35,858 nucleotides of DNA from positions 1 to 35,858 of the forward strand of contig QPMI01000264.1 of the NCBI GenBank assembly GCA_004431415.1, written 5' to 3'. The first letter of the stretch is position 1, and the number at the start of each line of letters is the position of its first letter. Made by a program: the position numbers and the translations under genes. Below are positions 1 to 35,858 of this stretch, piece after piece. This DNA is from Cyanophora paradoxa CCMP329 (Eukaryota > Plantae > Glaucophyta). Below the pieces are notes generated by a model. That model was given only the letters and a program-made list of their open reading frames with translations, was not told the origin of the DNA and ran no database searches.

Positions 1-1913
1 ACGGCGAGGGCGAAGATGCCGGCGATGCGCTGGAAGCGCGCCATGTCGCTGTTGCTGCTCCGCGCCTGCGGCCGGTCCAGAGCCATGTGGATCTGTCGCA
101 GCGGCAGTAGAGGTTAGGAGGGCGCGAGAAGCGAGCGAGCGAGCGAGAAGGAGGCGGGCGGGCGGGCGACTGACTGACTGACCATGCGGGCGGCGATGGT
201 GTCGTTGCCGGTGGCGGTGACGAGGGCGCGGGCCGAGCCCTGGACGGCCAGCGTCCCGGCCAGCGCCACGTTCTTCGACTCGAGGGGGCTGTCGTCCGTG
301 CACTCCTTGCAGCGGCCCTGAGGCGTCCCGATCCCCGTGAACAGGGCCATGTCCACCTGCGTGGGAGCGAGCGAGAGGATCCTTGCTTGAAGGCGCGAGC
401 GAGCGAGCGAGCGAGCGAGCGGGGAAGGGCACCTTGAAGTCGGTGCAGTCGACGATGCGGCAGTCGGCGGGGATTCGGTCGCCCGCCTCCAGGAGGATCA
501 AATCCCCAGGCACGAGCTCCGCCGCGTGCACGCGGCTCCGCGCGCCCTCGCGCACGACCTGCGCCCACTGCGCCCGACCGCCCGCCCGCGCGTCGGCTGC
601 CGCCCGGCCCGGCCCGGCCCGGCCCGGCCCGCGACGCGGCACGGACCTGGGGAATGATATTCGAGTAGAGAGAGCCGCCGATGGGCCGGATGTTGAGCGT
701 GACGTCGCTGCGCGGCCGCGTTCAGGCGGGGCGGGGCGGGGCGGGGAGGGCGGGCGGGCGGGGTACCAGACGGCGATGAGCACGAGGAGGCCGATGGCGA
801 TCCCCAGAGCCTCCTTGTCCGAATCCAGTCCGTAGAGAACTGCGCGGGGCGTCGCGCCGATCCGGGCTTCAAGCGCAGCGCAGCCCGCACCGAACGAGAA
901 GCAGGCGCAGATCCAGTAGAGACCGCAATACCCGCTGAAGAGGCCCTTGAGGTACGGCAGTAGCCCGAAGAAACGTCGCGGCAGCGATATGGCGTTCTTG
1001 CCCTGCGGCCGCGCGCGGTCGGCAGGGGCGGCCGGCCGCCAAACTCGCAACTGGCGCGCGCACCCGCTTTGCGAGCTCTTCATGCGCCCTAATCTCTGTT
1101 AGGCCGCGCTCCGACTGCGTGTTGAAGCGTTCCTGCGCAGAAACCACAGTGAGCGATCGGTCGCTTGCTAGCACGGGCTCCGGACTGGTGCGGCGCGAAC
1201 CTCCAGTACTTCTAACCTAACTTGGTGAGAGTCCTGCGCGGCGCAGCGCACGTCAGGACGCTGAAAGACGCGCGGCGCGAGCCCCCCGCCGAAGCGCACG
1301 TTGTCGCCGTATTCTGTGCTATCCGCGTTGAGCCCGACCTTCTGTCTTTCCAGGGCGGCGCGCATTTTGATTGCTGCCTCCCTGAAGTGCGAGCGAAGCT
1401 ACGGAAAAGCGGATAGCCGATCAGCGAACGCCTCTTTGCTGACGGAAGGCGGGAATGCTGCACCTGGAGACTCTCCCATCCTACCGAGTGTTTTGAGCTC
1501 TTATCAATGAGGTGATCTGCGCATAACACCCAACGCGGCGTCAGCGGTCTGGCGTCAGAGCCAAAACGCCCGCTGACCTGAAGATTCGACGCTTGTCCTG
1601 CCGGCTTTCCCCGCTGGATCCCACGCTAAGGAGCCGAAAACAAGCAGTTCATCAGCAGAAAGACGCAGAGAAAACGTATGCGCCACGAAGCGCGAGGTGG
1701 CAACCGAAAGGCCGGCGGACCGTGATCGAGTGTCTTCGGGGTCATGCGGTCGAGTCCAGATAAAGCTGCAGCTCCTCTTCGGATCTCGAAAGAGGATGAC
1801 CGACGGCCGGGGCCGACATGTGCATCGAAGGAGAGCCGGGCGCCGATGTCTGTGGCTACGATTCCGCTGGTTGCGGCCGGCATTGGTCTGGAGCCGCTGG
1901 TTGCGGCCGACAT
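1..1913 (-). CDS. P-type ATPase, Na+/K+-ATPase alpha-like (P2C-like), 5' part; multi-exon, continues beyond window start
   Basis: Spliced exons read KHSVGWESLQ/ERFNTQSERGLTEIRAHEELAKR/GKNAISLP...KGLFSGYCGLYWICACFSF (cation-ATPase N-terminus and M1). They continue VVREGARSRVHAAELVPGDLILLEAGDRIPADCRIV and VDMALFTGIGTPQGRCKECTDDSPLESKNVALAGTLAVQGSARALVTATGNDTIAARM (A-domain, colinear with Na,K-ATPase VDNSSLTGESEPQTR...PLETRN...TGDRT). The start ATG at 1913 is tentative. Confidence 0.88.
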
Positions 1914-2816
1914 GGTCCAAGGCGCTGGGCAAGAAAGGGAGGCTCGGAGGCCCCTTCTTGGCTAGCTAGCTATGCAAGGTCGCCGCTTCGTTGGGGGGGT
2001 ACGCGCTGATGTGAATTTTCGTGACTCTGTTTTTATGCGCCCTATTGCGCGCGTCAGGCGTCCGCCTTGACGCTTGCGCGCGATATGCGATGCCGCAATG
2101 CCGCAGTGATCATGCAGCCTGGCAGCTGCAGCCTGCAGGTTAACGTTGGATAAGTGGAATAAGCGTGCATGACATGATGCGCATGCGCGCGCAGCGCTAG
2201 CGCTAGCCGCCATTGTATACCGGCCCCGACAATGATTAGCCTTGCGCGAGGAGTCGCCGAGGACGCCTTTTTGGCGCGGCTCTCTGGCGACTCCCTGCGG
2301 GCTGTCCCTTGAAGAAAGGGTCATGATCAAGCCATGATCAGAAGCACCAGGTGGCAGGCGCGCATTATTGCCAATGTTTGCCATCAGGCTAGGTCTAGAT
2401 CTACACCTCTACGGAAGGACGCGGCTTGGACGCCCTCCTAAGCGTGTGCGATCGCGAGCGCCCTTAGCTAGCGCTTTGATAGGCGCCATGCGAGCAGCCT
2501 GCGCTCTATAGCTAGGCCTTAAGCCTGCATCTATAGCTGCGCATGCGCGGAAGAAACAGTAGATCAAATTTCAGAGGGGGGCGACTGCACCTGGCTAAAT
2601 CTAGACTGCATCCTCAATAGCCTGCAGCTGCCGACATGCGTCGACGTCGCGAAATGAAGCTTCAGGGGAGCTGTGCTAGGCTCCAACTTCCATCAGCTTC
2701 AAAACGGGGGGCCGTTAGCTAAATAAAGGGGCGTTAGATCTAGAAGAGATCTAGATCGACATGCATTAATTATATATAAAATTCAGTCGACGGGAACGGG
2801 CGAGCGCGGACCGGGC

Positions 2817-3696
2817 TCATGCGCGCCTCCGGCCCTCCGGCCGCGCCGAGGGCCGGGCGAGCTCGAGGAGGTCGAGGGCGGCGTCATACAGCTTCACGAA
2901 GAGCGGCTGCGCGAGGGCCGCCGCGGCGTAGAAGAGCCGGAAGGGAGCGCTTGGGCTTCCGCCAAGGGCGCAAGGGAGGACGAGGAGCGAGTGGTGGTCC
3001 ACCTGCTTGAAGAGTGAGGATCCGGACGGGCCATGGCCAACGTGAACAGGGGCCGATCGATATCGCGAGGCCCAGCGGGACGCACATGCTCGCAAATGAG
3101 CGCCAGGCCCCCGGGTTTCTCCCTCTTGAACCGCAGCCATACCACGAGCGGGAACGTGAATCGCGGGGCCAGCTCACGCAGGGCGCGCAGCGGAACGAGA
3201 GCCGGGCCCGGGCGAAGTTGTAGGTTACACCAGACCACGGCGCGCTCGCGCTTCGCGTCGATCACTGTCTCCACGAAGTCGACCTGCAGAAAATGGATGA
3301 GGCCACAACGCGTGCGTATATGGGCGTCGACATCCGAGCCAACCTCACCTCGTAGTCCAAGACCGCCGTGCCGAATCGGTACGCTGCAGCGAAGAACGTG
3401 AATACAGACGCGTCGGTCGCGGCGGAGCAGCGCTCCCGAAGACCGCGGCCGCAAACCGCTGTCGGTTTGTACGAAAACCGCAAACCGCAATAGAGCGCGC
3501 GGCGGCCGCGGGAGCGCGCGAAGAAGGTAAAGATAGACACGTCCTCGGCGAAGCACCGCTCCACGAGCTCCCGCTGGATCGACCTGCCCCGCGCTCCTTC
3601 AAAAAGAACGTACGCGGGGCGATCTTGGGACGCGAACCTGTCCTTGCCCGTCACGCCGCGGATCACCGCGTGGATGCTCTCCTCCGTAACCTCCAT
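2817..3696 (-). CDS. Small NTF2/SnoaL-like fold protein (about 5 exons)
   Basis: GT-AG joins give MEVTEESIHAVIRGVTGKDR/SIQRELVERCFAEDVSIFTFFARSRGRRALYC/AYRFGTAVLDYE/VDFVETVIDAKRERAVVWCNLQLR...FPLVVWLRFKR...LICEH/VDHHS... The pattern (ERxFxxDxxF, beta-rich core, terminal IxxHxD) is typical of NTF2-like proteins. The family call is by eye. Confidence 0.6.
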
Positions 3697-6105: not shown

Positions 6106-9100
6106 ATGGGTGGGGCACAAGGCAAGACGACGCCCTCGTCGCCTACGATGCTGCGCAGCAACGAGCAGGCCACAAGGGAGGCGATAGCACAGGCCCGCGC
6201 CCATCTCGATGAGATCAACGCAAAAGCGAATCGACGGAGCTCGGGGGCTCAGGAGGAGGCAACTCCACGATCGCCCTCGAAACCTGCTGTCCCAACTTCC
6301 TCCACAGTCGGAGCCAACCAGGCGGCTGCCGTACGACAGGCTCTCGCAAAAGTCAACAATACCTTGCACGACACCTTTGAGTCGAGCTCATCGACCAAGG
6401 ACGTCGTGGGCAGCGCGGCTATCATGCCAGCTGTCCCGACCGCATCTCAGCCCGCTCTCCGCAAATCGTCCCTCAGCTCCCAGATCATGCCTTCGGGAAG
6501 CACCACGGGCCCTTCGTCCACCGGCAAAACCTCCGCCGCCCTTGCCCCTCGTTCGTCCCTCCGAGCCCGATAGAGACATTCGATCTCACCGTCCGCCCCC
6601 GCGCAGCGCCCGAACCGGGTCTCGTTTACACATGGGGCTCGGGCGAGGCGGTGGGAGTTGGAGACGAGATGGAGGTCTCGACCCCGGCGGTTCTCGCGAC
6701 GCTCGAGCAAGAACACGGAGTGAAGACCGTGTCGCGGGTCGCCGCGGGGCCCAACTTCACGCTCTTCCTCTCTCCCGAAGGCAGGCTCTACTCTTGCGGG
6801 AACAACGACGACGGCCAGCTCGGCGTGGGGGACGAGCAGCCGCGGTCGGTCCCGACGTTCGTCGTCTTTCCCGCCGGCGTCTCCATCGCCCGCATCGCGT
6901 GCGGCTACTGCCATGCAGGTAAAAGCTTCCCCCGAGCGAGCGAACGCCGCCGCGCCGACGCGTCTGACCTGCCGAATTCGAACGCCGCAGCCGCGTGCGA
7001 CACTCGTGGCGTCGCGTATACGTGGGGCAGCGGCCTCATGGGGCGCCTGGGCACGGGAAGCGAGAAGGTCCACCCGAACCCGACGCGGATCGATTCCCTC
7101 GCCGCGGCGGGCGCCTTCGTGAGCAATGTCGCCTGCGGCCAGTACAACACGGGCTTTGTGTGCGTTCAAGTGCAGCTGCCGGGCGCGCCGCCTCGCCTCA
7201 CGCGCCGCGCGGCAGCACGGACGACGGGAGGCTCTTCGTGACTGGCTCGAACGACTCAGGGCAGCTCGGCCTCGGGGACTCGAACCCGCGGCTGACGCCG
7301 ACCCTCGTCCCGGCCCTCTCCCGCGTCGCTCAGGCGCGCGCGACGCTTCCGCGGCCTCCCGCGCCCTCCATCGTTGAGCTGAGCTTCCGTCCTTCGCAGG
7401 TCTCCTTCGGGGACCGGCACGTACTCGTGCTGGACGACGCGGGGCGCGTGCGGGCGGCCGGCGACAACGAGTTCGGGCAGCTCGGCATCCGCTCGGGTGA
7501 CACGGAGACGCGGCACGCCTTCGAGGAGCTGCCCAAGTTCACGGGCGCCTCGGCGGCCGCGCGGGCCGTGCAGGTGGCCTGCGGCGAGCGGCACAGCTCC
7601 GTGGTGGCCGCCGACGGCGGCCTCTACACCTTTGGGCACTGGGAGTCGTGCCAGCTCGGCAACCTCGTCAACTCGGACGCGCACGTGCCGACGCAGGTCG
7701 CCGCGCTGTCCGGCAAGCCCGTCGCCGCGACGGCCGTCGGGCCCTCCAACTCGCTCGCCGTCCTCGACGACGGCTCGGTCTGGTCCTGGGGCTACAGCAT
7801 CGACCAGCCGATCCCGAAGCCCGTCCCGTTCGACGACGGCCCGTTCGTTCAGGCGGCCGCCGTCGGCGCCGCGCACTTCGCCGCGATCACGAAGCGGACG
7901 GACGAGGTCGTGGAGTTCCCGTGGAGCGAGCACGACGCGGAGGTGCACTCGGGCCAGGAGCAGGCCGAGGACGCGCTCGTGCCCGTCCCCGCCCTCCGCG
8001 GCAAGAAGCTGGTCCAGCTCGACGCGCGCTTCACGCACTTCGGCGCCGTCACGGCCGCCGGCGAGCTCTACCTCTGGGGCCAGAACGACGACGGGCAGCT
8101 GGGGATGGACGAGGAGGAGGGCAGCCGCGAGGACCGGGCCGCCCCCACGCTGCTGCGCTCGCTCCGGGAGTCCGGGGCCCGCGTGGTCGCCGTCTCCTGC
8201 GGCTACGTGCACACGGCGTGCGTTACGGACGACGGCGGCCTCTGGACGTGGGGCCAGGGCCTCATGGGCCGCCTCGGCCACGGCGACGAGCGGGACCGGA
8301 GCAAGCCGGAGCGCGTGCGGGCGCTGGTGGACCTGCGGGAGCGCGCGGCGCGGCCGGCCTGCGGGCAGTACATGACGCTCTGCGTCTCCGAGTCGGGCAA
8401 GACCTTCCGCTGCGGCGTGGGCATCGGCGACCAGAACGTGCGCGGCGCGGAGCAGAGCGGCGCGGGCGCGCCGCGCCGCGCTTCGTTTCTGACAAAGCTC
8501 GCTCGCAGCCGGCGCTGGCGATGGCGCAGGTGGGCGGGGGCCTCGCCGGCAAGCGGGCGCGGGAGGCGGCGTGCGGGGACCGCCACTGCGCCGTGCTGGC
8601 CGACGACGGGGCGGTCTACACGTGGGGCGACGGCGACACGGGCGCCCTGGGCCACGGCGACGCGGAGCACAAGGGCGCGCCCAAGGCCGTCGAGGGCGCG
8701 CTCAAGGGCAAGCGCGTCCTCTCCGTCGCCTGCGGCGAGCGCCACACGGTTCGCCCCCCCGCCCGCCCTTGTTCTGCCGTCCTCTGCCTTAGGGCTGCGC
8801 GCTGACGGGGCGCCCGCCCTTCCTTTCGTTCAGATCGTGGCGACGGAGGGCGGGGAGGTGTACGCCTGGGGATGCGCCGACACGGGCCAGCTCGGAAACG
8901 GCGACTCGGACGCGCGCGACGTCCCCGCCCCGCGCCTCGTACCCCTCCCCAAGGGCGGCCCCAAGGTGCGAACGGAGCGAAGCGCGCCGCGTACCCCCCC
9001 CTCCCCCTTCCCGCATCTGAGCGGGCCCCCGCTCAGATGAAGACCGTGCTGGCGGGCCCCGTGGTGGCCGCCGCGCTGGACGAGAAGGGCGGGCTCTGGG

Positions 9101-18808: not shown

Positions 18809-21574
18809 CTACAAGCTGCCACATCCTGCGCCCTCAACGCACTGGGCGGCGAAGGAGGCGCGGAGGGCGGCGGGGTCGAGGCCGCGCCCGATGAAGACCA
18901 TGCGGCACTCGCGGCGCTCGCCCTCGCGCCAGGGGTGCGCCTCCTCCCCGATCTCAAAGAGCGCGTGCACTCCCTGCGCGCGCGCGGGGGCGATGAGTGC
19001 GAGGCTTAAGCCAAACTTCCAAGGCCCCCCCACCCCAAAGAGGGCGCTCCTTAAAGAAAGAAAGAGGGCGCTCCTTCTAGCTTCGAAGCTTTATCAAACT
19101 AACACAACGAGCTGGACTTTCATTGATATACTCAGACCGGGCTCGCCTGGAACACGAAGCGGCCCTCGCGGCCGGCGAAGGCCACGACGCCCTTGCAGCG
19201 CCACACCTGCGATCGGGTGGGCGGCGGCTGGGAGGGCGGGCGGGCGAGAGAGGCGGCGGGCGAGAGAAAAGAGGCGGCGAGAGTGGCGGCTAGGCCTGGC
19301 CGTCTATGGCCAAGAGAGCTCGAAGCTTGAAACGTTTAAGCTCAATGCCTTTACGAGGCTTGTAATTAAGATGCCTCGTTGTGACATGATCACGGGCCTC
19401 AGTGCCGGGGGGCGCCTCCCAGAGGGTCCGCCCCTTTTAATGAAAGGCGCCCTTATAATTAAGAAGAAGCTTAAGAAGCCTCACATTAGCATCTTAAGAA
19501 GCTTAAGCTCGGCGCCATTAAGAAGCTTAAAATGCCTTACGGACCTCGGTGCAGGGGGGCGCCTAGGGGAGGGGCGGAGGGGCGGCTGGGCCCAGCCTTC
19601 TATGATTTAGGGAGGTGCCGGATCTAGACGGACCTCGGTGCCTCAAATTATATCTCAAGCTTGAAGCGTTTAAGCTAAGCGCTTTTTGAAAGCTGTCACG
19701 GACCTCGGTGCCCGGCGGCGCCTCCCACAGGGTCCGCCCCAGCCACCGCTCCAGCGCCTCGGGTCCCGCCGCCGGGCCCGGGTGCACCTGGGGCCGGTCT
19801 TCAGCTGGAGCCGAGCGCGCGCATTCGAAAGATCGAAGAAGCGTGTTGGCTAAGGCTTGAGATTGGTAAACATGTCAGCAAGAATTATGTTGGCCAAGGT
19901 TTAAGATTTGAGGCGCCTTGAGCTTCTGAAGGGCGCCTTTCTTGAAGGTCAAGCTGAAGGGGTACGGCTGCGCACGACGGAGACGGCCCGGACGCCCGAG
20001 TCGTGCACGTGCGGTGCGGGGCCCCGCGCCAGGTCCGCGTCGACCTGCGCGGCCCGGGCTCGAATCCGGGCGGGGCCGCTTTTTAAAGAAAGGGGACGCG
20101 GCGGGCCTCGATGGCGCGCTTGGCGTCGAAGGCGCGAATGTCGAGCACGAAGTCCAGGTCCACCTGCCGGGTACGCGTTCTTTCGAGAAAAAGAGGGGGG
20201 GTACGGGGCGCGCCTTGGACCGCTCGGTGACGAGCAGGGACGCGGTCGGGTTGATCCCCCTCAAGCGCGCCTCCACCCCCGACAGCTGCCCGGCGGCGCG
20301 GGATCAATTTGCGAGCTTTTTGAACCTGCGCGGGGCGGGGCGGGGCGGGGCGGGGCCGGCGCGCGCGCCTCCGTTGGTGTCACGAGGTCCGCCTTGTTGA
20401 GCAGGATGCGGTCCGCAAAGGCGACCTGCCCGGATTCGAACCGGAGCTCGAGGGGGGGGGGGAAGGGGGTACGGGCAGCACCTGCCGGGCGCACTCGTTA
20501 ACGGCCCCGTCGGGCTTCGCCTCGTCGAGGTGCTGGGGCGCGTGCTTCGCGTCTGCGGACACCGGTACCCCGGGGCGTCAGAACCGGGGAGACCTAGGGG
20601 GGTACGCGATGGTGGGGGGCGGGGGCGGGACTCGGGAGTACCGCAGAGGGTCACGATGCCGTCCAGGTACACGGGGCTCTGCGGCGGGAGGGGGGGGGGA
20701 TTGTGGGCGGGGTACGGGCGAAGAAAGCTAGCTCGAGGGGGGTACGCCTGCCTCGAGGGCGTCGTCGACCCAGAAGACGCTGGCGACGGGCCCCGGGTCC
20801 GCGAGCCCCGTCGTCTCCACCTGAGGAGGGGGGGATGATGCGTGCGCTGGAGGGGTACAGGGGGCCCAAACGCGTGGGGTCCGCGTGCGCACGAGGATGT
20901 AGTCGAACAGATCCCGCTTCTCCATGATGCGCTCGATCGTCACAACGAGATCATCCCTGCACGACCGCCACCATCGCTCCTCGACTCGCCCCGCCCCAGC
21001 CCACCCCGCGGCGCGCACCGGACGGAGCAGCAGATGCAGCCTGGCGTGTGCGCGAGCGAGCGCGCGGTCACGATCAGGCGGCGCGCGCGGAGCGAGCGCC
21101 CCGCATCGACCGCGCGGACCGTTGTTGAGCTCGTAGCACTCTTCGAAGATTTCGCCGTTGGCGCCCCGCACGAGGGCGTCTTCGATGCCGGCCTCCGCCC
21201 CGAACTCATTCAGGATGACCGCCACGCGCTTCCCGTGCTTCTCCGTCAGGATGTAGTTCAGCTGCCGGCGCGCGGCGGAGTCGGCGGCGTCAGCGGCGCG
21301 CGCGCGGCCAGCCGCGGGGATCGGCGGACCAGGGTCGTCTTGCCGGCGCCCAGGAAACCTGCGGGGCGCGCCGCGGAGGTGCACGCTTAAGCTCTGCGAC
21401 GGCGTGCGACGGGGGAAGCCCGCTACGGGCCGCGCGGGCCGGGTCGTGAACACGAGCGCACCGGTGACGATCTGCAGCGCACGGCGTGAGCGGCGCTCAC
21501 TTAAACAGAGCGTGTCGATGACTTGCTCGCACCGTGACCGGCACTTTCTTGCCGGTGCTGTCCGGCTCCTCCAT
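18809..21574 (-). CDS. ZNG1: CobW/COG0523 (G3E family) zinc-chaperone GTPase, CBWD/ZNG1-like; many exons
   Basis: [93 protein letters not shown], and the CobW_C block WRCKGVV...VFQGVH...[10 protein letters not shown]. Confidence 0.95.
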
Positions 21575-21800
21575 CGTTCTTGCACTGTACCCGTCTGTGT
21601 GGCTTGCCACTCTAGCTGAGCGAGCGGATCGCAGTTTAAAGTGTGCATCTTGATCCAAAAGCTCTCTTTAGGCCCGCAGGTGGCAGATCCGCAGCGAACG
21701 GCCGTCGCGGCTTGCAGTTGTTGCTCGCGCGAGCACGGCGACCGGGCAACTGGCGGCGCGAGTTGCCGCGAGAGCTAGGCGAACCGCCCTGCGGCCTGGC
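21575..21800. promoter_or_regulatory. Putative bidirectional promoter between CobW-like gene and DUS1
   Basis: Head-to-head ATGs at 21574 (-) and 21801 (+), with 226 bp between them. Confidence 0.5.
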
Positions 21801-23857
21801 ATGGCGCCGGTTATCCAGCCAATCCAGGCGCCCTCGGGGGCGCGCAACGACGTGGCCTTCGCTCTCTACGAGAAGATAGGCAACCCGAAGCACATTTGCG
21901 CACCGATGGTGCGCTCTGGCGGCGGCGAATCGCGATTAGGGCGCAGAGCGATCGAATCTCGGCGCAGGTGGATCAGAGCGAGCTTGCCTTCCGCATGCTC
22001 ACGCGCCGGTACGGTGTGGACCTCTGCTACACTCCGATGCTGCACAGGTCGGACCCCGCGCTCCGCCCCGCGGCCCTCCGCCCGAGGTTCACACGCGGCC
22101 CCCGCGCGCGCGGCCCTTGCCTCGCGCAGCGTCCTGTTCGCGAAGGAAGAAGCGTACAGGAAAGAGTTCTTCTCGACCATCCCGGAAGATAGGCCCCTCG
22201 CAGTCCAGGCGCGCCCCGCCCCGCCCCGGCCCGCCGGCGCCGTCAGCGACGTGCCGCGGCCGCGCTGACCTCGCCCCCGCCCTCGCCCTCGCCCCGCGCG
22301 CGCAGTTCTGCGCCAACGACCCTGCCGCGCTCCTGCAGGCGGCCTCGCTCGTGGCGGACAGCTGCGACGCCGTCGACATCAACCTGGGTCCGCTCTAGAT
22401 CTCGCTCCGGCCCTGGCTCTCCGCCTAGGCCTGATCTCCGCCTGCGGCCCGAGAGCTCTAGATCCCCGACTGCGGCGCTAGATCTCCAACCCCGGCTCTA
22501 AAGCCGAGCCGAGCCGGGGCGGCCTGCAGGCTGCCCGCAGGGGATCGCGCGGCGCGGGCACTACGGCGCATTCCTCCTGGAAGAGCCGGAGCTCGTCCAC
22601 GACCTGGGTTCGAATCCCCGCGCGGACGATTCTTGACCGAGCCGCCGACCGGTACCCCCCGCAGTCTCCACGCTGAGCCGGAACCTGCCCGTACCCGTCT
22701 GGGCCAAGATTCGCATCCTTAGCTCTGGCCTCCAGAAGACCATCCAGTTCGCCCAGGCAAGCCTCGTACCACCGACCCGCTGTCCGCGTACCCCCCTCAC
22801 GGGGCGGGCCGGCCGGGGTAGATGCTGGAGCGCGCGGGGGCCCAGTTGATCGCGGTGCACGGGCGAACGAAGGAACAGAAGGGACCCACCTCGGGTACCG
22901 CGGACTGGGACGGCGCGCTCCCCCCCCCCCCCCCCCCCGCCCCTCCCCCCCCTGACTTGGAGCGCAGCGATTCGCATCGTAAGGGAGCACGTCTCTGTAC
23001 CCGTCATCGCGAACGGCTCGGTGCGCCCACTCTTTTGCCTGCTTGTGTTCATCGGCGGCAAGTAAACTGAAGCTCACATTGGATCGCGCGCGCCACGCAA
23101 GGTGCACTCGTATGAGGACGTTACGGCCTGCCTCGGCCGCACGGGCGCCGTGGGGGTCATGGCCGCCGGTGCGGCCGCCCCGCACCGCAGCGCCTAGCCT
23201 TCTCCCTCGTGAAATTATATGACTTTTTCTCCCTCAATCTTTCTTGTAGAGGGCCTGCTGGAGAACCCGGCACTCTTCTCGGGGGAGGATGTACCCAAGC
23301 TCCGCCTCGCCAGCGAGTACCTGGACGTGCGCGCAGTACCCCCCCGGCAGATCAGATCAGATGAAATCTGATCTGATTTTATCTGATCTGATCTGAGCGG
23401 GCAGCTCGCGGAGGAGCACGGGACGCCGGTGGGCATGGTCCGCGCGCATCTCTTCCGGATGTACGGCACCTCGGCCCTCGCCGCGGTGCGTCCTCGGATC
23501 TGATCTGAGCTGTCTGATCTGATCTGAACTGATCTGATCTGATCTGATCTGATTCGATCCGCAGGCGCCCGACCTGCGGGACGCGCTGGCGGCCGCCCTG
23601 ACCCTCCCCGCGCTTCGTTCGCACTGGGCGGAGCTCTGCGCCCGCTTCCCGGAGGGCCTGCCCCGCGGGCCCCTGCCCTCCCAGGCGCGCCCTGTAAGCC
23701 CAGCCGAGCCGAGCCGGGCTAAGCTGAGCCTCAGGTGCACGCGGCGGCGGCGGCGCGGATCGCGGCGGCGGAGCGGCAGGCGAAGGCGCGCCAGGAGGCG
23801 GAGGAGGCGCTTCTGGACGGGGGCGGGCTCTTCGGGGGGTTGGCCGGGCCCGACTGA
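21801..23857 (+). CDS. DUS1: tRNA-dihydrouridine synthase 1-like, multi-exon
   Basis: [82 protein letters not shown]...[25 protein letters not shown]: the Dus1 signature motifs in order. Confidence 0.95.
23348..23555. repeat. (ATCTG)n/(CAGAT)n pentanucleotide microsatellites in two consecutive DUS1 introns
   Basis: cagatcagatcagatgaaatctgatctg... at 23348-23396 and gatctgatctg... at 23497-23555. Confidence 0.9.
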
Positions 23858-24165
23858 GGGACGGCGCACGGGGCCCGGTAATCGAGCGTCTGCAGTGGGG
23901 GCCTGTTCTTTCGCGGCTTGGAGACGAACGTTCTTTCACTCGTGCTGGAGTTCGGCCCCTTAGCCTCTTCCGCCCCCCCCCCCCCCTCCCCCCCCCGGGG
24001 CCGGCCCACCCATCCAGCCCCGGCCGGCCCGCGCGCTGGCCCGAGCGCGGTCGCTGTCGGCCCCTGTCGCTCAATTTGATTCGATCCAGTACAGCTTTGG
24101 CAGAGACTGGCCCGTGGTTTTCTCTCATTCCGAGTCCTCTTCAAGGCTTCTTCTCTCGAGCCTGC

Positions 24166-24192: not shown

Positions 24193-25003
24193 GTTCTCTC
24201 TCTCCTTCCCAAGCTTGTCAAGGGAGACCCCGCCAACCTCGCCACGGCCAGGCTGATGAGAGATACATTTATTTGCATTTATTCAAGCAAGTGTCTTCCC
24301 ACAAGTTCCCACTTGGTTATGCGATTTATCTTTCATGACGCCGATTGCGCATGCAAGCCCAGCTTCGAATTCATGTGCATCGACGGCGATTTCGAATTCG
24401 ACAAAGATGAATCGATATCCGCCTTGAAATTCGAGGGCGCATGCGCGGGCTCGTACAGCACGATGAAAGGCCGCAGATGCGATGTTTTCGAATTTACAGC
24501 CCGAGTTTGCGTTTGAAATTAATAGGCGGCGGCTTTCATTACACGCCGAGTGGAACGGATTCATAGAGACTAGTACTGGGAGCGATTCCGAGCGAATGAA
24601 GTGAGCTTCGGAATTCCGAATTCGAACTTCGGAAGTTCGCGATTCGACCGTCGATCGGGAACAGCCGCACTGCGGCGGCAGCCTGAGCTGCAGCCTGCAG
24701 CCTACACTGGTACAGCCTGCAGCCTGCAGCCTGCAGGCTGCGCTGCTGCGCATGCGCATGCGGTTTCTATATATCTCTCATGAATCATGATACATAAATT
24801 TAAATTTCCGATCGCCGTTGAACCAGTGCGGCAGTGCCGTCTCGGCGTGCACGGCGTGCGCGTGCGCGTGTTATAGAAATTCAACGGCACGAATTATGTG
24901 ACCGTTGTGACGTACATGCACGTGCCGCGGTGACGCAACATTGTGTACCTTACAGACTGTCGTTTCGATTTTCCGCAATGTGTGTTATAGTATCAACTTA
25001 TAG

Positions 25004-25172
25004 AGAGCCTTCTCATCGCTTCGGCGACCGCCAGGCCCTGGTACCGAGTACTCCGGGGCAATCGCTAGCGCGAACCGTCGGACGACGGACGCGGCGCCGG
25101 CGATCGCTTAAAAAAGGCCCCGGCCCGATCCGAGCCCATGGCCGGCGGGCATAGTGAACATAGTGCCAAAAT
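25004..25172. mobile_element. Diverged isolated copy of the left end (TIR + subterminal region) of the 26137-31249 element
   Basis: Ungapped match to 26137-26305 over 169 bp with 8 substitutions counted by eye. Sequence further inside and the outer flank are unrelated. Confidence 0.9.
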
Positions 25173-26854
25173 GTCGCCCCGTAGGCTCGAAGTCGACGGT
25201 CGACGTCGACCGTCGACGACGAGTCGACGACTTCGAAATTCGAATTCACGTCGACTTTGGTAACATGAAACCACCGATGATTGGTCAGCAGGCCACTCTA
25301 CCCGAAACCGACGGTCTACTTACTGTAAACGTGAGACCTCCGGCAGCACTTAATATTCAGCGCTATTAATATTCGGCGTAGGCTCATGCACGGCGCCGAA
25401 TATTTAAAATTTAAACTGCCAGAATTGTGCAGATGTATGGGAAAAAATCGATTACTATACCCGCCACCGAGGCTGACTGGCTGTGTTCCCGAAAATATGA
25501 TGCCGACGAACCACAATGTCGGCTCATTTTTCGGATTTTGCCGAAATTATTTTTCGGGTTTTGCATGTTTTACGTATCCCGGTACCGGCCTACTACCGGG
25601 TTCCGGGGTACGTGTACATAAATCGGTTATAAATTTCGATTAATATTAACGCGTATACGGCGTACTAATATATATCATAGTATATACGTACCGGAGTTCG
25701 TCAGCTCCGGTCCAGCCTCCGGAGCTAGCGCTCGATAGCGAGGCCCGGCCCGCCCGGGGGCCGGAGCTCGAATTAGTGCGTTCCGGAGCTTGTTGTTGCG
25801 GAGTTTAAAGCCTCAAAGGAATCAATTGCAATGGAAGTTATTAACCAATTTGAGCTGAAAGTTCCAGATGCATGCAATGATTATAGAACATACCTTCGGG
25901 CAATTGCAAGAAATTCCGATTCATCTGCGAACACATAGGGTTCAGAGCGTAATTGGTCGGGCTCAAGACTCGAGAGTCGAGTCTATGCGCGGGGCAGATC
26001 TAGCGATCCAATTGAATAGAGAATCTCTATGCGAGCAAGCTCGCAGCGCTACGGGAGGCGGGCACGCACTGCAGGCGTTGGCGTTGGCTGGTGCGACGAA
26101 CTTGAAGCAGCTCCTGCGCAAGCGATCGCCGGTCAGAGAGCCTTCTCATCGCTCCGGCGATCGCTAGGCCCTGGTACCGAGTACTCCGGGGCGATCGCCA
26201 GCGCGAACCGTCGGACGACGGACGCGGCGCCGGCGATCGCTTGAAAAAGGCCCCGGCCAGATCCGAGCCCACGGCCGGCGGGCATAGTGAACATAGTGCC
26301 AAAATTTCGCTCCGAAAACACGCTTTTTAGAAGGATCGGAAGAAAGCGCGCCCAGGCAGGTCCGAGGGGCGGTTCCGGGACGTACCTACTGACTCAGAGC
26401 TGCTTGCGCTGGGCCCGCCGGGCGACGCCATGGTTGAGAGATCGAATCCCTGCGCGCCGCCTTACAGCGGCCGAGGAAGGGGCGACGGCTGCAGAATTCG
26501 ATGATGTGAACCTCGGACAAGCGAAAGCGTGTAGCTAGCGCGCCGCCGGCGCCGCGGGTGAGCCGATGAAGCGAGCGATGTGTACTCCTCGCGTGCGCGG
26601 GCGCGGCGAAGTCGCCTGCGGGGCGGGCGTGGCGCCGCGGGGCTGAGCACGGCGCGCGCGCTGCGAAGCGCTATGCGCGAGCTTTGCGCGAGCTTTGCGT
26701 CGACGCCGCGCGCCTCACTTTCGAAGGTCGGGGTACCCCCCGACTCATTCCCCCTAAACTTGGGGGCTCGGTGGCTTAAAAGCGAAGGCTCTGGGGTACA
26801 TCGACGAAATTTGACTTGCTCCACAAAATTGCAAGGCGCTCAAGAACTCTACGC

Positions 26855-29800
26855 TCACTGGAAGTTCAACTGCGGCCCTACAAACTGCTTGCACCGCTCC
26901 ACTAGCTCATCTAGTCTACCTGGGTCAGCAAACCGATCCTCCTCGGCCACTAGCGGCTTGCGGAACCATTCTTTCGCAACCGCAACAAATGGTGCGCAGT
27001 CCATTGGGCTGCGCTGGTGGTGCCCGGCGCATACCACCCGACCCCATCGAGGCGAGAAAAGAATCTCGAGCACGCGGTCAGCTCGGCATCTTGCCTTGAA
27101 GATGGAGCCAGCGGTCGTGTGGAAGGTCATATCATGCACAGGCTCCGAGAGCTGAAGGAGGGCCTGCACTAATGCAGCGGCGTGACTCTTGATGGTGACT
27201 CTGCTCGTGATATATATGAGCTCGAGGCAATCAGCAAGAGTGGTTACTGATATCCATGGACAGAAAAAAGGAAACCACAAGTAGAAAAAGGAAGAGGCGC
27301 ACGGCCAGTGGTCCCACTCGAGATTGGTGAAGCCCCGGAGGATAACCATTGTTGCCTCCGGTGTTGTTCCCGGTACATCAAGCCGGTGCACTTGACTGGA
27401 GACGCTGCAGCGCGCGGCACCTTGCGTGGCCGTGCACTCCAGTGCACCGTCGTTTGGCGGTAGGCGAGCCAGCTTCTCGACGTACGCACGTGCTGCGGGG
27501 CTCGCTGCCCTCGCGTCCCGTATCGCGGTTGCGACCACGGCGATGCTCCCCCGTACCGATCTGGAGCCTCCTTCCTCCCGTGACATTGCAGGGAACCAGT
27601 GCAGTTTCGCCTTCAGGGTATTGCTCAGCGCGTTGAAGTATCGGTTCTCGGTGTTCGCCACGCTGCGACGCGCCAAGTCAGAGCACGTTCAGCGGGAGAA
27701 GGAAATAAGAAGGAAAAGAAACAAAGGAAAAGAAAGAAAAGAGAAGGGGGTACGCGGACCGTCTGTACAAGCAGGACAGGATGGGTGTCGGAATAGGCCG
27801 CTCAGGTGTGCCTAGCCATAGAGGCTTGTTTCGCCTCGTGTATGGCGGAGGCACATACGCCTCAACATCGATGTCCACATCGACCAATTGTCCCGCGCCG
27901 TTTGGCTGAGTTTCTCGTGAGCTTGAGCATTTGCGATAACCGTTGCTCGTACCTGTTGGACTTTCCGTGTAGTTCTCCTGTATGCCGTCGCGCCGAGTTC
28001 GTCCACCTCGGGTACTCCTCTCCAGAGTCGTTGCCCCCATTCAGCATCCGGTGTGTTAGAACATCTGACTTGGAGCCCATCTGTTCCAGCACTGCAGCCA
28101 CTTGCTTCAGAGCCTGAAAGCTGTTCTCCGCTGCGCGACCTGTACCGTATTTCTCCTGCACCGGAATTAGAGTTCAGTAACCCCTTCTGTGGCGTCGTCT
28201 TCGTACCCTCGCACGCACCGCCAGCTCTGGCTTCATGCGCAGCCGGGTGAAGAGCTCGTTCGCCGGCGCTTCGTGGTGGAGAACGGCAGGGTTTCCCATT
28301 GCCTCGTGGCACGCCTGTGGAGAACGGCAGGGTACGCGCATCAGCTCCACGTGTCGGGGGGGGGGGGTACGCGTAGCGAAGGGGGAGGGGGGTTGGAGGG
28401 GGGGGTAGTCGAACCTCCATTGGACTTGGCGCCTGTTCGGGAGCCGGGCCTGGGTCTTGACCTGCTTGCCGCGCGGCCTCCCACGCTGCTCGCGCCCGCC
28501 TTGCGTTGCCGTGCTCCTCGTCGTCGAATGCCTTGGCTAGATCTACAAGGCCTTTGAATATGAGCTGGTTGGCAATTGTCGCCCACCGCCGAAAACGCGA
28601 TTTGCGGACAAGGTCTGAGAAGATAATGCCGACTGATATGCTGCTTGCCGGCCCTGCAAGAAGGCGAAGAAGCTCCTTGCCGCTCTTCCGAACAGCCTGC
28701 AGGACCTGCACATCGCTTGCAATCTTGCCGCCACGACCGACATCCCTGTTGCCTCCGTACGCGTTGCACTTCCGAAGAAGCTTCTTCACCTCCGGGTACG
28801 ACACGAGATCGTCCTGCGCCTTGCGCTTCCGCCCTTTCCCACGTGGCAACTCTTCCACCAACGCGGCCTCTGCAGCTGCTGCTGCAAGCTCCACACATGC
28901 ATGAAGCCTGCGTCGCCATTGGTAAGAAAAAAAACTTTACCCCCCCCCGCCCCCCCCCCCCCCCCCGGATGCATACCACAGCTGGAGTGATTCGCCTTCC
29001 CGTGTCTGCTGCTGTGCTGCGTGCACTGATTGAGCGAGACTGCGGAACTGGCCCTTCATTTCTTCCTTCGTGCCAAGGTACATTGCTTGCTGGCTGAGCC
29101 CGAGAGTCGCTTGCATACGCAGAAGGTTGATTTCAGACTGTCCGTTTGTGACCTAATATAAAATTAAGAACATGTTACGAAAAGACAGAGCATGAAAGCA
29201 TCGTGCACCTCCATGAAAGCATTTGCAAGACCTTGTGCCCGTGCAGGCTCACGGTCCAACTCAGCGTCTCCTGGCCGCAGGGCCAGAAGCTGTGTGAGCA
29301 CAGCAGCAGCTGAGCGGATCTCGCCATCATCAGGGGCTGCATCACATTTCGGTTTTCAAAATAGAATGCAGTGATTTGAAGGGACGTACTGTAGAAATCG
29401 AGTGATGAATTGCTCGATCGCCCGTAGAAGAACACCTCTATCCAGAGCGATAGGAACATCTTCGATTCAACAGCGTATGATCGTTTGTCATCGCTAGTAC
29501 TTGTGTCATCCTTGCCCTCCTGAAAGTCCAGAGACAAGATGACCTGACCGGGCAGCAAGTAAGCAGAAGAAGCACGAGGCAAGCTGGCATGGACACGTGC
29601 CAGATCTATCTCTCGCAGTCGTCTCTCACGGATGTAGATCTTGTTGGTATAGAAGCTCGTCACCCGGGCCTTTAGCCAGTCGTAGTGCCTGGCTCGAAGG
29701 TCCGTATCCACTGCAAACTCACCGTGCGCCCCTGGCACGCCAAGGCCCAGAAATGCACACTGTGCCTGCAGTGAGTGCCGTGCTTCAACTGGCCAAGATA

Positions 29801-31015
29801 GATAGATGCTTACGTCCATATCAATGAGCTCATCGAGTTGAGAAGAGCTTGAGGTATCTTCCTTGTCGCCAGCAGCTATATCAGCATCTGGATGAGGGTC
29901 GGGACCGGTGCGCTGAAGGCTTGGCGATTCGAGTGCGACCTAAATGCAGTATCTCATGGCGAATCTCAAGCTAAAGAAGATCGAGGACGCACAGTGCTCA
30001 TGAAGTGCTTCAGAGCATGGAGATCCTCCAGTGTCCGTGTCCGGTTCTTTGCTGGTTCACCTCGAAACTGCAACCGACAAGCGTTCGCCTGAGCTTGCCG
30101 AGCCGCTTCTGTCACCTGGATAAGTTGGTCTTAGATTCCATTCGATCAATTCTTTGAGCTGCAGAGCACCTCATCAAGCCAATCAACACAACTCTGAAAT
30201 TTGGGGCCTCGAAACGCTCCCTTTGTGCCCACAAACAGGTTGCGCAGTGCACGCAAGCATCTGGCAGGGGGCAGGTCGACGATGATGTCCTCCACATAAT
30301 GCACTTGGGGGTCCAGATCTGCAAACATGATAAGACAAAGAGGCGGCGTGCAGATTTCACAGAGAAACGCACAGATCTCGAAGGGTGCATGTGCTTGTCG
30401 CCTTCTGCCAGCGCCACCAGCGTCGCCGCCCGCTGCGCCGTCCAGGGCGCCACCCGCCGCGCCGCCTCCCGTGCCGCCTCCCGCGCCGCCTCCCGCGCCG
30501 CCTCCCGCGCCGCCTCCCGCGCCGCCTCCCGCGCCGCGCACCGGGCCGGGGGAGGGGAGGGACAGGGCCGGGGGGGGGGCGGGCCCGGGGGAGGGGCGGG
30601 GCCGGGGGAGGGACGGGCCCGGGGGAGGGGCGGGGCCGGGGGAGGGGGGGGCGGGGGGAGGGGCGGCCCGGGGGAGGGGCGGGCCCGGGGGAGGGGCGGG
30701 CCCGGGGGAGGGCGGGGCCGGGGGAGGGGGGGGGCGGGGGGAGGGGCGGGCCCGGGGGAGGGGCGGGCCCGGGGGAGGGGCGGGCCCGGGGGGAGGGGCG
30801 GGGCCGGGGGAGGGACGGGCCCGGGGGAGGGGCGGCCCGGGGGAGGGACGGGCCCGGGGGAGGGGCGGGGCCGGGGGAGGGGCGGGGCCCGGGGGAGGGG
30901 GAGGGGCGGGGACAAGCTCAAGGCCGGAGCCGCCCCCGAGGCCGCCCACGAGGCCACCACCCGCCGCGCGGCCCGCCAGAAGGGGGTTGGGAGATGAGCT
31001 GGAGGTCCACTCCAT
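26855..31015 (-). CDS. Element-encoded protein of roughly 1,100 aa, 13 predicted introns; Pro/Gly-repeat N-terminus, basic NLS-like KGRKRK, C-terminal HNH-like motifs
   Basis: Predicted donors at 30372, 30169, 29992, 29813, 29600 (GC), 29389, 29208, 28976, 28414, 28206, 27952, 27759 and 27302 each pair with a YAG acceptor in matching phase. They give a continuous frame apart from one homopolymer indel near 28010, where copy 2 has the extra G. The start codon is tentative (alternatives at 31053 and 31070). Confidence 0.75.
30461..30912. repeat. 12-nt (GCCGCCTCCCGC)n array followed by ~17-18-nt G-rich minisatellite (CCCGGGGGAGGGGCGGG-like)
   Basis: Directly visible at ~30461-30536 and ~30541-30912. 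The repeats recur from ~35700 to the window end in copy 2. Confidence 0.92.
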
Positions 31016-31401
31016 CTCTTCCTCCCCAAAGAGTGTGCTCCTGGGGTCGACATGCTGCGCAGTCGGGCATAAGACACCGAAAAGCAGCGATCGCTTGGCC
31101 AATGAGAAGGCGGTGGACGTCAAGCCCGCGGCGACCGTTAGAACTGAGAACCCAGAAGCGATCGCCGGCCCAGCAGCTCTTTGTTAGAGGTCGGACTCGC
31201 TGGGTATGGCGCCGAACACAAAGCGATCGCCGAGCAATGAGAAGGCTCTATGCGCGGGGCAGATCTAGCGATCCAATTGAATAGAGAATCTCTATGCGAG
31301 CAAGCTCGCAGCGCTACGGGAGGCGGGCACGCACTGCAGGCGTTGGCGTTGGCTGGTGCGACGAACTTGAAGCAGCTCCTGCGCAAGCGATCGCCGGTCA
31401 G

Positions 31402-34400
31402 AGAGCCTTCTCATCGCTCCGGCGATCGCTAGGCCCTGGTACCGAGTACTCCGGGGCGATCGCCAGCGCGAACCGTCGGACGACGGACGCGGCGCCGGCG
31501 ATCGCTTGAAAAAGGCCCCGGCCAGATCCGAGCCCACGGCCGGCGGGCATAGTGAACATAGTGCCAAAATTTCGCTCCGAAAACACGCTTTTTAGAAGGA
31601 TCGGAAGAAAGCGCGCCCAGGCAGGTCCGAGGGGCGGTTCCGGGACGTACCTACTGACTCAGAGCTGCTTGCGCTGGGCCCGCCGGGCGACGCCATGGTT
31701 GAGAGATCGAATCCTGCGCGCCGCCTTACAGCGGCCGAGGAAGGGGCGACGGCTGCAGAATTCGATGATGTGAACCTCGGACAAGCGAAAGCGTGTAGCT
31801 AGCGCGCCGCCGGCGCCGCGGGTGAGCCGATGAAGCGAGCGATGTGTACTCCTCGCGTGCGCGGGCGCGGCGAAGTCGCCTGCGGGGCGGGCGTGGCGCC
31901 GCGGGGCTGAGCACGGCGCGCGCGCTGCGAAGCGCTATGCGCGAGCTTTGCGCGAGCTTTGCGTCGACGCCGCGCGCCTCACTTTCGAAGGTCGGGTACC
32001 CCCCGACTCATTCCCCCTAACTTGGGGGCTCGGTGGCTTAAAAGCGAAGGCTCTGGGGTACATCGACGAAATTTGACTTGCTCCACAAAATTGCAAGGCG
32101 CTCAAGAACTCTACGCTCACTGGAAGTTCAACTGCGGCCCTACAAACTGCTTGCACCGCTCCACTAGCTCATCTAGTCTACCTGGGTCAGCAAACCGATC
32201 CTCCTCGGCCACTAGCGGCTTGCGGAACCATTCTTTCGCAACCGCAACAAATGGTGCGCAGTCCATTGGGCTGCGCTGGTGGTGCCCGGCGCATACCACC
32301 CGACCCATCGAGGCGAGAAAAGAATCTCGAGCACGCGGTCAGCTCGGCATCTTGCCTTGAAGATGGAGCCAGCGGTCGTGTGGAAGGTCATATCATGCAC
32401 AGGCTCCGAGAGCTGAAGGAGGGCCTGCACTAATGCAGCGGCGTGACTCTTGATGGTGACTCTGCTCGTGATATATATGAGCTCGAGGCAATCAGCAAGA
32501 GTGGTTACTGATATCCATGGACAGAAAAAAGGAAACCACAAGTAGAAAAAGGAAGAGGCGCACGGCCAGTGGTCCCACTCGAGATTGGTGAAGCCCCGGA
32601 GGATAACCATTGTTGCCTCCGGTGTTGTTCCCGGTACATCAAGCCGGTGCACTTGACTGGAGACGCTGCAGCGCGCGGCACCTTGCGTGGCCGTGCACTC
32701 CAGTGCACCGTCGTTTGGCGGTAGGCGAGCCAGCTTCTCGACGTACGCACGTGCTGCGGGGCTCGCTGCCCTCGCGTCCCGTATCGCGGTTGCGACCACG
32801 GCGATGCTCCCCGTACCGATCTGGAGCCTCCTTCCTCCCGTGACATTGCAGGGAACCAGTGCAGTTTCGCCTTCAGGGTATTGCTCAGCGCGTTGAAGTA
32901 TCGGTTCTCGGTGTTCGCCACGCTGCGACGCGCCCAAGTCAGAGCACGTTCAGCGGAGAAGGAAATAAGAAGGAAAAGAAACAAAGGAAAAGAAAGAAAA
33001 GAGAAGGGGGGTACGCGGACCGTCTGTACAAGCAGGACAGGATGGGTGTCGGAATAGGCCGCTCAGGTGTGCCTAGCCATAGAGCTTGTTTCGCCTCGTG
33101 TATGGCGGAGGCACATACGCCTCAACATCGATGTCCACATCGACCAATTGTCCCGCGCCGTTTGGCTGAGTTTCTCGTGAGCTTGAGCATTTGCGATAAC
33201 CGTTGCTCGTACCTGTTGGACTTTCCGTGTAGTTCTCCTGTATGCCGTCGCGCCGAGTTCGTCCACCTCGGGGTACTCCTCTCCAGAGTCGTTGCCCCCA
33301 TTCAGCATCGGTGTGTTAGAACATCTGACTTGGAGCCCATCTGTTCCAGCACTGCAGCCACTTGCTTCAGAGCCTGAAAGCTGTTCTCCGCTGCGCGACC
33401 TGTACCGTATTTCTCCTGCACCGGAATTAGAGTTCAGTAACCCCTTCTGTGGCGTCGTCTTCGTACCCTCGCACGCACCGCCAGCTCTGGCTTCATGCGG
33501 CAGCCGGGTGAGAAGCTCGTTCGCCGGCGCTTCGTGGTGGAGAACGGCAGGTTTCCCATTGCCTCGTGGCACGCCTGTGGAGAACGGCAGGGTACGCGCA
33601 TCAGCTCCACGTGTCGGGGGGGGGGGGGGTACGCGTAGCGAAGGGGGAGGGGGGTTGGAGGGGGGGTAGTCGAACCTCCATTGGACTTGGCGCCTGTTCG
33701 GGAGCCGGGCCTGGGTCTTGACCTGCTTGCCGCGCGGCCTCCCACGCTGCTCGCGCCGCCTTGCGTTGCCGTGCTCCTCGTCGTCGAATGCCTTGGCTAG
33801 ATCTACAAGGCCTTTGAATATGAGCTGGTTGCAATTGTCGCCCACCGCCGAAAACGCGATTTGCGGACAAGGTCTGAGAAGATAATGCCGACTGATATGC
33901 TGCTTGCGGCCCTGCAAGAAGGCGAAGAAGCTCCTTGCCGCTCTTCCGAACAGCCTGCAGGACCTGCACATCGCTTGCAATCTTGCCGCCACGACCGACA
34001 TCCCTGTTGCCTCCGTACGCGTTGCACTTCCGAAGAAGCTTCTTCACCTCCGGGTACGACACGAGATCGTCCTGCGCCTTGCGCTTCCGCCCTTTCCCAC
34101 GTGGCAACTCTTCCACCAACGCGGCCTCTGCAGCTGCTGCTGCAAGCTCCACACATGCATGAAGCCTGCGTCGCCATTGGTAAGAAAAAAACTTTACCCC
34201 CCCTCCGCCCCCCCCCCCCCCGGATGCAACCACAGCTGGAGTGATTCGCCTTCCCGTGTCTGCTTGCTGTGCTGCGTGCACTGATGAGCGAGACTGCGGA
34301 ACTGGCCCTCATTTCTTCCTTCGTGCCAAGGTACATTGCTTGCTGGCTGAGCCCGAGAGTCGCTTGCATACGCAGAAGGTTGATTTCAGACTGTCCGTTG

Positions 34401-35858
34401 TGACCTAATATAAATTAAGAACATGTTACGAAGACAGAGCATGAAAGCATCGTGCACCTCCATGAAAGCATTTGCAAGACCTTGTGCCCGTGCAGGCTCA
34501 CGGTCCAACTCAGCGTCTCCTGGCCGCAGGGCCAGAAGCTGTGTGAGCACAGCAGCAGCTGAGCGGATCTCGCCATCATCAGGGGCTGCATCACATTTCG
34601 GTTTTCAAAATAGAATGCAGTGATTTGAAGGGGACGTACTGTAGAAATCGAGTGATGAATTGCTCGATCGCCCGTAGAAGAACACCTCTATCCAGAGCGA
34701 TAGGAACATCTTCGATTCAACAGCGTATGATCGTTTGTCATCGCTAGTACTTGTGTCATCCTTGCCCTCCTGAAAGTCCAGAGACAAGATGACCTGACCG
34801 GGCAGCAAGTAAGCAGAAGAAGCACGAGGCAAGCTGGCATGGACACGTGCCAGATCTATCTCTCGCAGTCGTCTCTCACGGATGTAGATCTTGTTGGTAT
34901 AGAAGCTCGTCACCCGGGCCTTTAGCCAGTCGTAGTGCCTGGCTCGAAGGTCCGTATCCACTGCAAACTCACCGTGCGCCCCTGGCACGCCAAGGCCCAG
35001 AAATGCACACTGTGCCTGCAGTGAGTGCCGTGCTTCAACTGGCCAAGAAGATAGATGCTTACGTCCATATCAATGAGCTCATCGAGTTGAGAAGCTTGAG
35101 GTATCTTCCTTGTCGCCAGCAGCTATATCAGCATCTGGATGAGGGTCGGGACCGGTGCGCTGAAGGCTTGGCGATTCGAGTGCGACCTAAATGCAGTATC
35201 TCATGGCGAATCTCAAGCTAAAGAAGATCGAGGACGCACAGTGCTCATGAAGTGCTTCAGAGCATGGAGATCCTCCAGTGTCCGTGTCCGGTTCTTTGCT
35301 GGTTCACCTCGAAACTGCAACCGACAAGCGTTCGCCTGAGCTTGCCGAGCCGCTTCTGTCACCTGGATAAGTTGGTCTTAGATTCCATTCGATCAATTCT
35401 TTGAGCTGCAGAGCACCTCATCAAGCCAATCAACACAACTCTGAAATTTGGGGCCTCGAAACGCTCCCTTTGTGCCCACAAACAGGTTGCGCAGTGCACG
35501 CAAGCATCTGGCAGGGGGCAGGTCGACGATGATGTCCTCCACATAATGCACTTGGGGGTCCAGATCTGCAAACATGATAAGACAAAGAGGCGGCGTGCAG
35601 ATTTCACAGAGAAACGCACAGATCTCGAAGGTGTGCATGCTTGTCGCCTTCTGCCAGCGCCACCAGCGTCGCCGCCGCTGCGCCGTCCAGGGCGCCACCC
35701 GCCGCGCGCCTCCCGTGCCGCTCCCGCGCCGCCTCCCGCGCCGCCTCCCGCGCCGCCTCCCCGCGCCGCCTCCCGCGCCGCGCACCGGGCCGGGGGAGGG
35801 GGAGGGACAGGGCCGGGGGGGGGGGCGGGCCCGGGGGAGGGCGGGCCGGGGGGAGGGG
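31402..35858 (-). mobile_element. TIR-bounded element copy 2 (truncated by window end)
   Basis: The left TIR starts at 31402, and the sequence is colinear with 26137 to ~30610. Confidence 0.8.
32117..35858 (-). CDS. Second copy of the element-encoded gene, 5'-incomplete, with many apparent frameshifts (sequencing error or pseudogene)
   Basis: Same exons as 26855 to ~30610 (e.g. LEWDHWP, RVVCAGHHQ, stop at 32117), but multiple single-base indels, mostly in homopolymers. Confidence 0.65.

Follow-up and report, generated by a model that had tools for sequence, protein, structure and literature searches.

The right-hand part of contig QPMI01000264.1 from the glaucophyte Cyanophora paradoxa CCMP329, analysed here as one window of 35,858 nucleotides, holds tandem copies of a terminal inverted repeat (TIR) element that carries a single many-intron gene. 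The repeat unit is 5265 bp long and runs head to tail, with the sequence at 25982-31246 recurring from 31247 to the window end (Table 1). Only small indels, nearly all of a single base and mostly in homopolymers, separate copy 2 from copy 1, and because such differences are typical of long-read error, we regard the two copies as effectively identical. The inverted repeats (IRs) of 28 and 29 bp match in 27 of 29 alignment columns, with one mismatch and one gap, and their alignment score of 24 compares with a maximum of 18 among 5000 random pairs. Octamers of GCGATCGC are concentrated at the unit ends, with seven there versus one in the first 24.9 kb: three lie near the right end (31087, 31158, and 31223), one in the spacer between copies (26122), and three more in the left end. 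An earlier note, made from the sequence alone, had reported TIRs of about 29 bp, subterminal motif clusters, two near-identical copies, and an orphan end, all of which our comparisons bore out. It had also drawn the element at 26137-31249; the IRs do lie there, but the repeat unit takes in the spacer as well.

To this array we aligned contigs of two DNA runs (X1 and X3) and two probable RNA runs (X15 and X17) over 25200-30450, a span that ends before the long GC array and the right end. Eleven of the introns in the gene body were recovered as RNA joints and one from adjoining RNA pieces, while the last (30319-30372) was placed by its position in a homologue described below. The body frame is open once a G missing behind 28009 is supplied, a base that is present in copy 2 and in all four runs; this slip breaks the frame, and public gene models are therefore truncated. 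Judged against the short-read contigs, copy 1 also has assembly slips at 27672, 28205, 29380, and 28393-28398. Thus the phase-consistent frame that the earlier note had read is continuous, but only after the G is restored, and its single 13-intron gene filling the interior does have those 13 introns, but lacks two further coding exons and a start codon (31696) that are predicted to fall in the next copy.

The left subterminal region of a unit apparently carries the beginning of the neighbouring copy's gene. On the minus strand, a leader with a 5' untranslated region (UTR) intron at 26450-26511 (62 nt, GT-AG; RNA joint 26432-26511, loose end 26616) is spliced over the left IR into a coding exon within the spacer. 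A copy taken on its own between its IRs thus has its gene start downstream of its gene end, facing outward. In X15, the exon joined to the spacer donor at 26069 begins with 17 bases that find their best window-wide match at 31054 (14/17), where the body exon start is preceded by an acceptor; because this contig diverges after those 17 bases, we assign it to a sister subfamily. Splicing from the spacer over the right IR was therefore seen in RNA contigs of the sister subfamily and is predicted for the subfamily in the window. Placing the RNA-derived sites on the array yields a frame of 1,143 aa with 15 coding introns, from the ATG at 31696 to the end at 26855. This frame apparently exists only across the head-to-tail joint, through the predicted cross-joint splicing, and because the start codon and two coding exons lie in the neighbour's end and spacer, both IRs fall in introns. 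No single contig in the four runs joins leader to body for the exact window subfamily, and in-frame joining of the two by chance has a probability of 1/3. An isolated copy could use an in-frame ATG at 31015, given another promoter. Over the same left end, at 26101-26282, we observed an unspliced RNA contig of 1,846 nt at 10-16 times the gene's depth, in which unrelated sequence runs directly into the final 34 bases of the spacer and then the left end; we rejected it as evidence for a helper gene, its junction at 26101 being out of frame with the leader exon.

Table 1. Features of the tandem array and its gene, with positions in the window
Feature	Position	Strand	Remarks
Orphan left-end fragment	25002-25181	+	180 bp, 94% identical, without spacer
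Spacer, copy 1	25985-26134	.	150 bp, high-copy; unique host DNA on its left
Coding exon in spacer	26070-26113	-	44 nt; RNA joint, loose end (26070); in this copy directed towards host DNA
Intron over left IR	26114-26385	-	272 nt, GT-AG; spans left IR and three GCGATCGC; RNA joint 26112-26385 in X15 and X17
Left inverted repeat	26137-26165	+	orphan end shares two further bases, from 26135
Leader exons	26386-26615	-	ATG 26431; acceptor 26616; left subterminal region
3' UTR and poly(A) site	26803-26854	-	poly(A) site near 26803; adapter and T run at loose end, X17
Gene body	26855-31054	-	14 exons, 13 introns
Body introns, first part	27201-27302, 27663-27759, 27906-27952, 28156-28218, 28315-28414, 28908-28976, 29153-29208	-
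Body introns, second part	29337-29389, 29544-29600 (GC-AG), 29760-29813, 29940-29992, 30116-30169, 30319-30372	-
C-terminal Cys/His-rich domain	26858-27450	-	D-H-W and C-x-x-H-H motifs shared by three lineages
GC-rich 12-bp and about 17-bp arrays	30457-30900	-	encode Pro/Gly-rich linker
Right inverted repeat	31222-31249	-	inside predicted 280-nt intron 31055-31334
Second unit	31247-35858	.	from repeat comparison; cut by window end
Spacer, copy 2	31250-31399	.	contains predicted exon 31335-31378 of gene copy 1
Predicted second coding exon of gene copy 1	31335-31378	-	44 nt, in spacer copy 2
Predicted first coding exon of gene copy 1	31651-31696	-	46 nt, ATG 31696, in left end of copy 2

Depth profiles of the run contigs revealed that the element is multi-copy. 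The unique flank contig had a depth of 25 in X1 and 104 in X3, compared with 317-382 and 2780-2880 for the gene-body contig, corresponding to about 13-15 and 27 copies, rough ratios taken from short-read contig depth. The copies of the body are merged into contigs free of bubbles. The element ends are far deeper than the body and polymorphic, being common to subfamilies that differ by many substitutions, and the spacer at 25985-26134, which is as deep as the left end, is by that depth part of the repeat family. A joint of 27058 to 30363 marks a 1,967-bp internal-deletion derivative, found at about 7 copies in X1 and 24 in X3. Short matches to other multi-copy sequence at 29085-29116 and 30166-30211 (loose ends and a 29116-30166 joint) are possibly another family member.

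The joints themselves were also recovered. The joint between right end and spacer occurs in contigs of all four runs and a spacer-spacer joint in those of one run, while the joint of host and spacer has single-copy depth in each DNA run, with the unique contig ending at 26010. The spacer-spacer joint matches what a filled site would leave on losing the IR-bounded unit, apart from a two-base loss and a one-base gain, and can be read as an excision footprint or, alternatively, as stacked ends. TC stands on the 5' side at four of five joints, the orphan end being without it. The orphan-end joint is single-copy in short-read contigs of X1 and X3. One base beyond the orphan end, 25183-25188 repeats the final six bases of the right end, possibly by chance; together with 25182-25188, the orphan end could represent an entire 187-bp mini-element that lacks a target duplication. 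The results support a selfish element in multiple copies that carries an orphan gene and in which no transposase could be recognised; the earlier note had overlooked both the membership of the spacer and the gene across the joint.

Relatives of the gene are few. A profile of the C-terminal half, run against 1.84 billion representatives, returned nine proteins, six of them C. paradoxa models and the other three exons of a single Logan contig (L001, positions 1-3338, from run SRR31724264). Models of the window family are in EukProt EP00741, 99% identical over the aligned stretch, which places the window in this alga, with several of them neighbours on one contig, and a second C. paradoxa family with 61-65% identity lies on four contigs. 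The L001 homologue is unbroken, 46% identical over 849 residues, and shares all 13 introns, each matching in codon and phase, with 41 of 144 four-fold sites identical; L001 is without GCGATCGC over positions 1-3338. Because L001 is unbroken and its introns are kept while so few four-fold sites are identical, the gene is old, under purifying selection, and no fresh capture. Word searches recovered only Cyanophora fragments and L001, and scans of viral, metagenome, and prokaryote contigs for homologues were blank; tblastn matches in phages were dismissed as noise, two of them lying on the strand opposite an annotated gene. Judged by its sequence, the protein is an orphan family without known relatives beyond three lineages. 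A title-level search of titles and abstracts on Cyanophora paradoxa and transposons found no such element described.

We searched the families and the Protein Data Bank (PDB) with single exons or database protein fragments of the gene as queries, and nothing significant emerged from sequence scans of Pfam, PHROGs, NCBIfam, PADLOC, and PDB. ESM Atlas matches were all below 0.9, and two AlphaFold models had a pLDDT of 36, too low for a meaningful fold search. The exons matched no transposase, recombinase, or helicase family, and pattern searches found no reverse transcriptase (RT), HUH, Walker A, or GIY-YIG pattern and no conserved serine-recombinase pattern in the window protein, nor HUH or Walker A in its L001 homologue. 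These scans agree with the earlier note, which had recognised no DDE/D triad, recombinase, RT, HUH-Rep, or helicase motif. A Crypton-like or other tyrosine recombinase was rejected, with one conserved HxxR but with the downstream His and Tyr of L001 missing from the window protein, as was a Sola-like first Asp, which is Glu in L001.

The C-terminal 160 residues contain six conserved Cys, from C744 to C891 in model numbering, and the D-H and CxxHH motifs are found in three lineages about 60 aa apart. We take this D-H-W/C-x-x-H-H region to fit a His-Me nuclease with a long insertion, and an Ulp1-type protease less well. For the former, the endonuclease VII profile gave a probability of 0.3%; for the latter (Ulp1/C48), the H-W and a Cys 70 aa further on are conserved but the oxyanion Gln is not, and there is no Pfam or PDB match. 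A middle stretch resembles the PD-(D/E)xK core, with its Lys replaced by Arg in L001; the YraN profile selects this stretch within 902 aa, but not significantly (P 0.085, probability <3%). A putative metal-binding hydrolase domain is the most that can be claimed for the C-terminal region. Neither the endonuclease VII nor the YraN test supports the nuclease-like cargo that had been proposed, and the accompanying comparison with Fanzor genes holds only as an analogy, there being no resemblance to RuvC/TnpB and no Pfam, NCBIfam, or PDB match.

The ends, the array joint, the multi-copy status, the deleted derivative, splicing, and long-term purifying selection on the gene are observed. With moderate confidence, we favour a non-autonomous TIR passenger moved in trans, probably by a putative Harbinger-type transposase. 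Such an element would carry one ancient accessory gene and be mobilised by a cut-and-paste transposase whose own element has these ends, in all likelihood a PIF/Harbinger (PHIS) enzyme of this genome, leaving the spacer-spacer joint as a probable excision footprint. The conserved ends, the deletion derivative, and the end subfamilies suggest that the termini act in cis and are served by a protein in trans, internal-deletion derivatives usually indicating that ends are used in trans. Copies lie head to tail with the 150-bp linker between them, and a promoter and first exons in the left end of one copy would fire across its left IR, the linker, and the right IR of the next. Only joined copies would then make the protein, so selection would favour trains. 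The protein may bind the GCGATCGC clusters or chromatin and aid escape from silencing, as VANC and Kaonashi (KIU) do for Vandal, with its Cys/His domain perhaps acting as a metal-binding hydrolase.

This reading has parallels in several known systems. Like PIF/Harbinger elements (HarbingerS, PHISTA; PMC12730594), the element has short TIRs (here 28/29 bp), non-autonomous derivatives, and an extra conserved gene. Harbinger relatives have duplications of 0, 2, or 3 bp, and several carry extra genes (PMC12730594). Unlike them, the window element is without a transposase or Myb gene and without a 3-bp duplication at the array joints or the orphan end, and its orphan gene stands alone, split across a joint. 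Because it holds neither a DDE transposase nor Myb/SANT, the Harbinger reading is compatible only as a non-autonomous partner. The element does not show the complete membership traits of any family compared here. VANC and KIU of the Vandal Mutator-like elements (MULEs; PMC13317346) likewise pair an accessory protein with short motifs in non-coding DNA, and a weak H-W...C spacing in the window protein recalls a Ulp1 domain; in contrast, the window protein has no match to Ulp1 models, its TIR element is of another type, and an anti-silencing role would be a guess.

Several observations weigh against the passenger reading. Neither a transposase nor a Myb gene is present in the element exons or next to the array. 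The proposed check for target-site duplications found none at any joint examined (array joints and orphan end), nor did we encounter a dispersed insertion with flanking DNA on either side. Depth in the spacer equals or exceeds that of the left end, an observation that suits a larger unit just as well. Finally, exon 28415-28907 is 25 nt too short in the two RNA contigs that cover the body, and the frame would therefore end early. In the same exon, these contigs carry G>A at 28695, absent from both DNA runs; candidate causes for the shortfall and the substitution are a difference between strains, editing, alternative splicing, or an artefact of alignment.

The larger unit is central to a possible but less probable alternative, a new autonomous group in which spacer, left end, body, and right end (5265 bp) move together and the orphan protein is the element's own enzyme. 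Multiplication would proceed via circles or concatemers, the split gene being made whole at their joint much as a promoter is created in circles of IS1111. We hold only tentatively the corollary that the gene is circularly permuted and whole only in a circle or tandem, with the joint spliced out and the 1,143-aa protein a new transposase or recombinase. Host DNA is joined at precisely the position where right end and spacer abut, TC precedes four of the five joints without duplication, and spacers are as numerous as left ends. The whole gene is kept in three lineages at 46-65% identity, adjacent gene models point to arrays in two of the three, and the 1.84 billion representatives held no further relatives. 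Opposed to this are the absence of a demonstrated catalytic motif and the orphan end, which lacks both spacer and TC. IS1111/IS110 elements (PMC11187229) share the subterminal IRs, the lack of duplication, and expression that depends on joined ends; unlike them, the window element is eukaryotic and spliced, has no DEDD recombinase, and would restore a frame through introns at its joint rather than a -35/-10 promoter. Replitrons (PMC10288648) also combine a single gene, no helicase, and an algal host, but the window protein has no HUH motif and its terminal repeats are inverted, not direct; no Replitrons are reported from glaucophytes. Of the two options in the earlier note, we favour the non-autonomous carrier of a conserved cargo and rank a new autonomous family lower.

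An unlikely explanation is a non-autonomous Helitron2/Helentron, with one IR at the terminus and its partner 150 bp inward, multiplied in tandem through RepHel acting in trans and with the gene as cargo. Asymmetric IRs, tandem copies, stacked ends, and the lack of duplication are all Helitron2 traits (PMC5148889), the IRs of the window element being asymmetric when the spacer is counted as part of it. However, the inner IR lies 150 bp from the end versus 20-50 bp in FoHeli, a longer offset; hairpins in the spacer do not surpass those of shuffled sequence (z 0.2 to -0.9), leaving no significant terminal hairpin; there is no T/T target, RepHel, HUH, or Walker A motif; and a 29-bp IR with motif clusters resembles a DDE end. 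Penelope-like elements (PMC8557442) similarly occur as partial tandems, one copy ahead of another, and retain introns, but the window element has no RT, GIY-YIG motif, or hammerhead core, and Rfam and hammerhead patterns gave nothing in it.

We consider it improbable that the array is a tandemly amplified host gene with old transposon ends in its first introns, spread by unequal crossing-over without transposition. The near-identical arrayed copies, the position of both IRs in introns, and the lack of a dispersed insertion with two flanks would suit this explanation, and contig names suggest that some arrays are fragments of few loci. The deletion derivative with both ends, the orphan end, the diverged end subfamilies, the second family on four other contigs, and the unique host joint at the spacer edge speak against it. 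It is very improbable, and largely refuted, that the duplication arose in assembly at the end of a contig: copy 2 does differ only by read-type indels, but the right-end/spacer joint is in all four runs and the body stands at 13-27 times single-copy depth.

The flank of the array contains host genes. On the plus strand, 21979-23860 encodes a Dus tRNA-dihydrouridine synthase, with a Pfam match on one exon and many short introns, and divergent from it on the minus strand is a CobW-type GTPase with many short introns (20300-21600). An RCC1-repeat protein lies at 6995-9040 (+). Within the otherwise single-copy flank, 25457-25520 is a short repeat with about ten variant contigs.

On either of the two leading readings, the passenger moved in trans or the autonomous group, a eukaryotic transposon gene would need a neighbouring copy for its expression, with both ends hidden in introns. 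Such neighbour-dependent expression would be a direct selective reason for tandem trains and, if true, the eukaryotic counterpart of bacterial IS elements that are activated at a junction. Since public runs differ about twofold in copy number, the activity of the element may be testable in culture. The protein represents a new, old, and strongly conserved family, which may be either a new accessory factor, for example in anti-silencing, or a new transposase.

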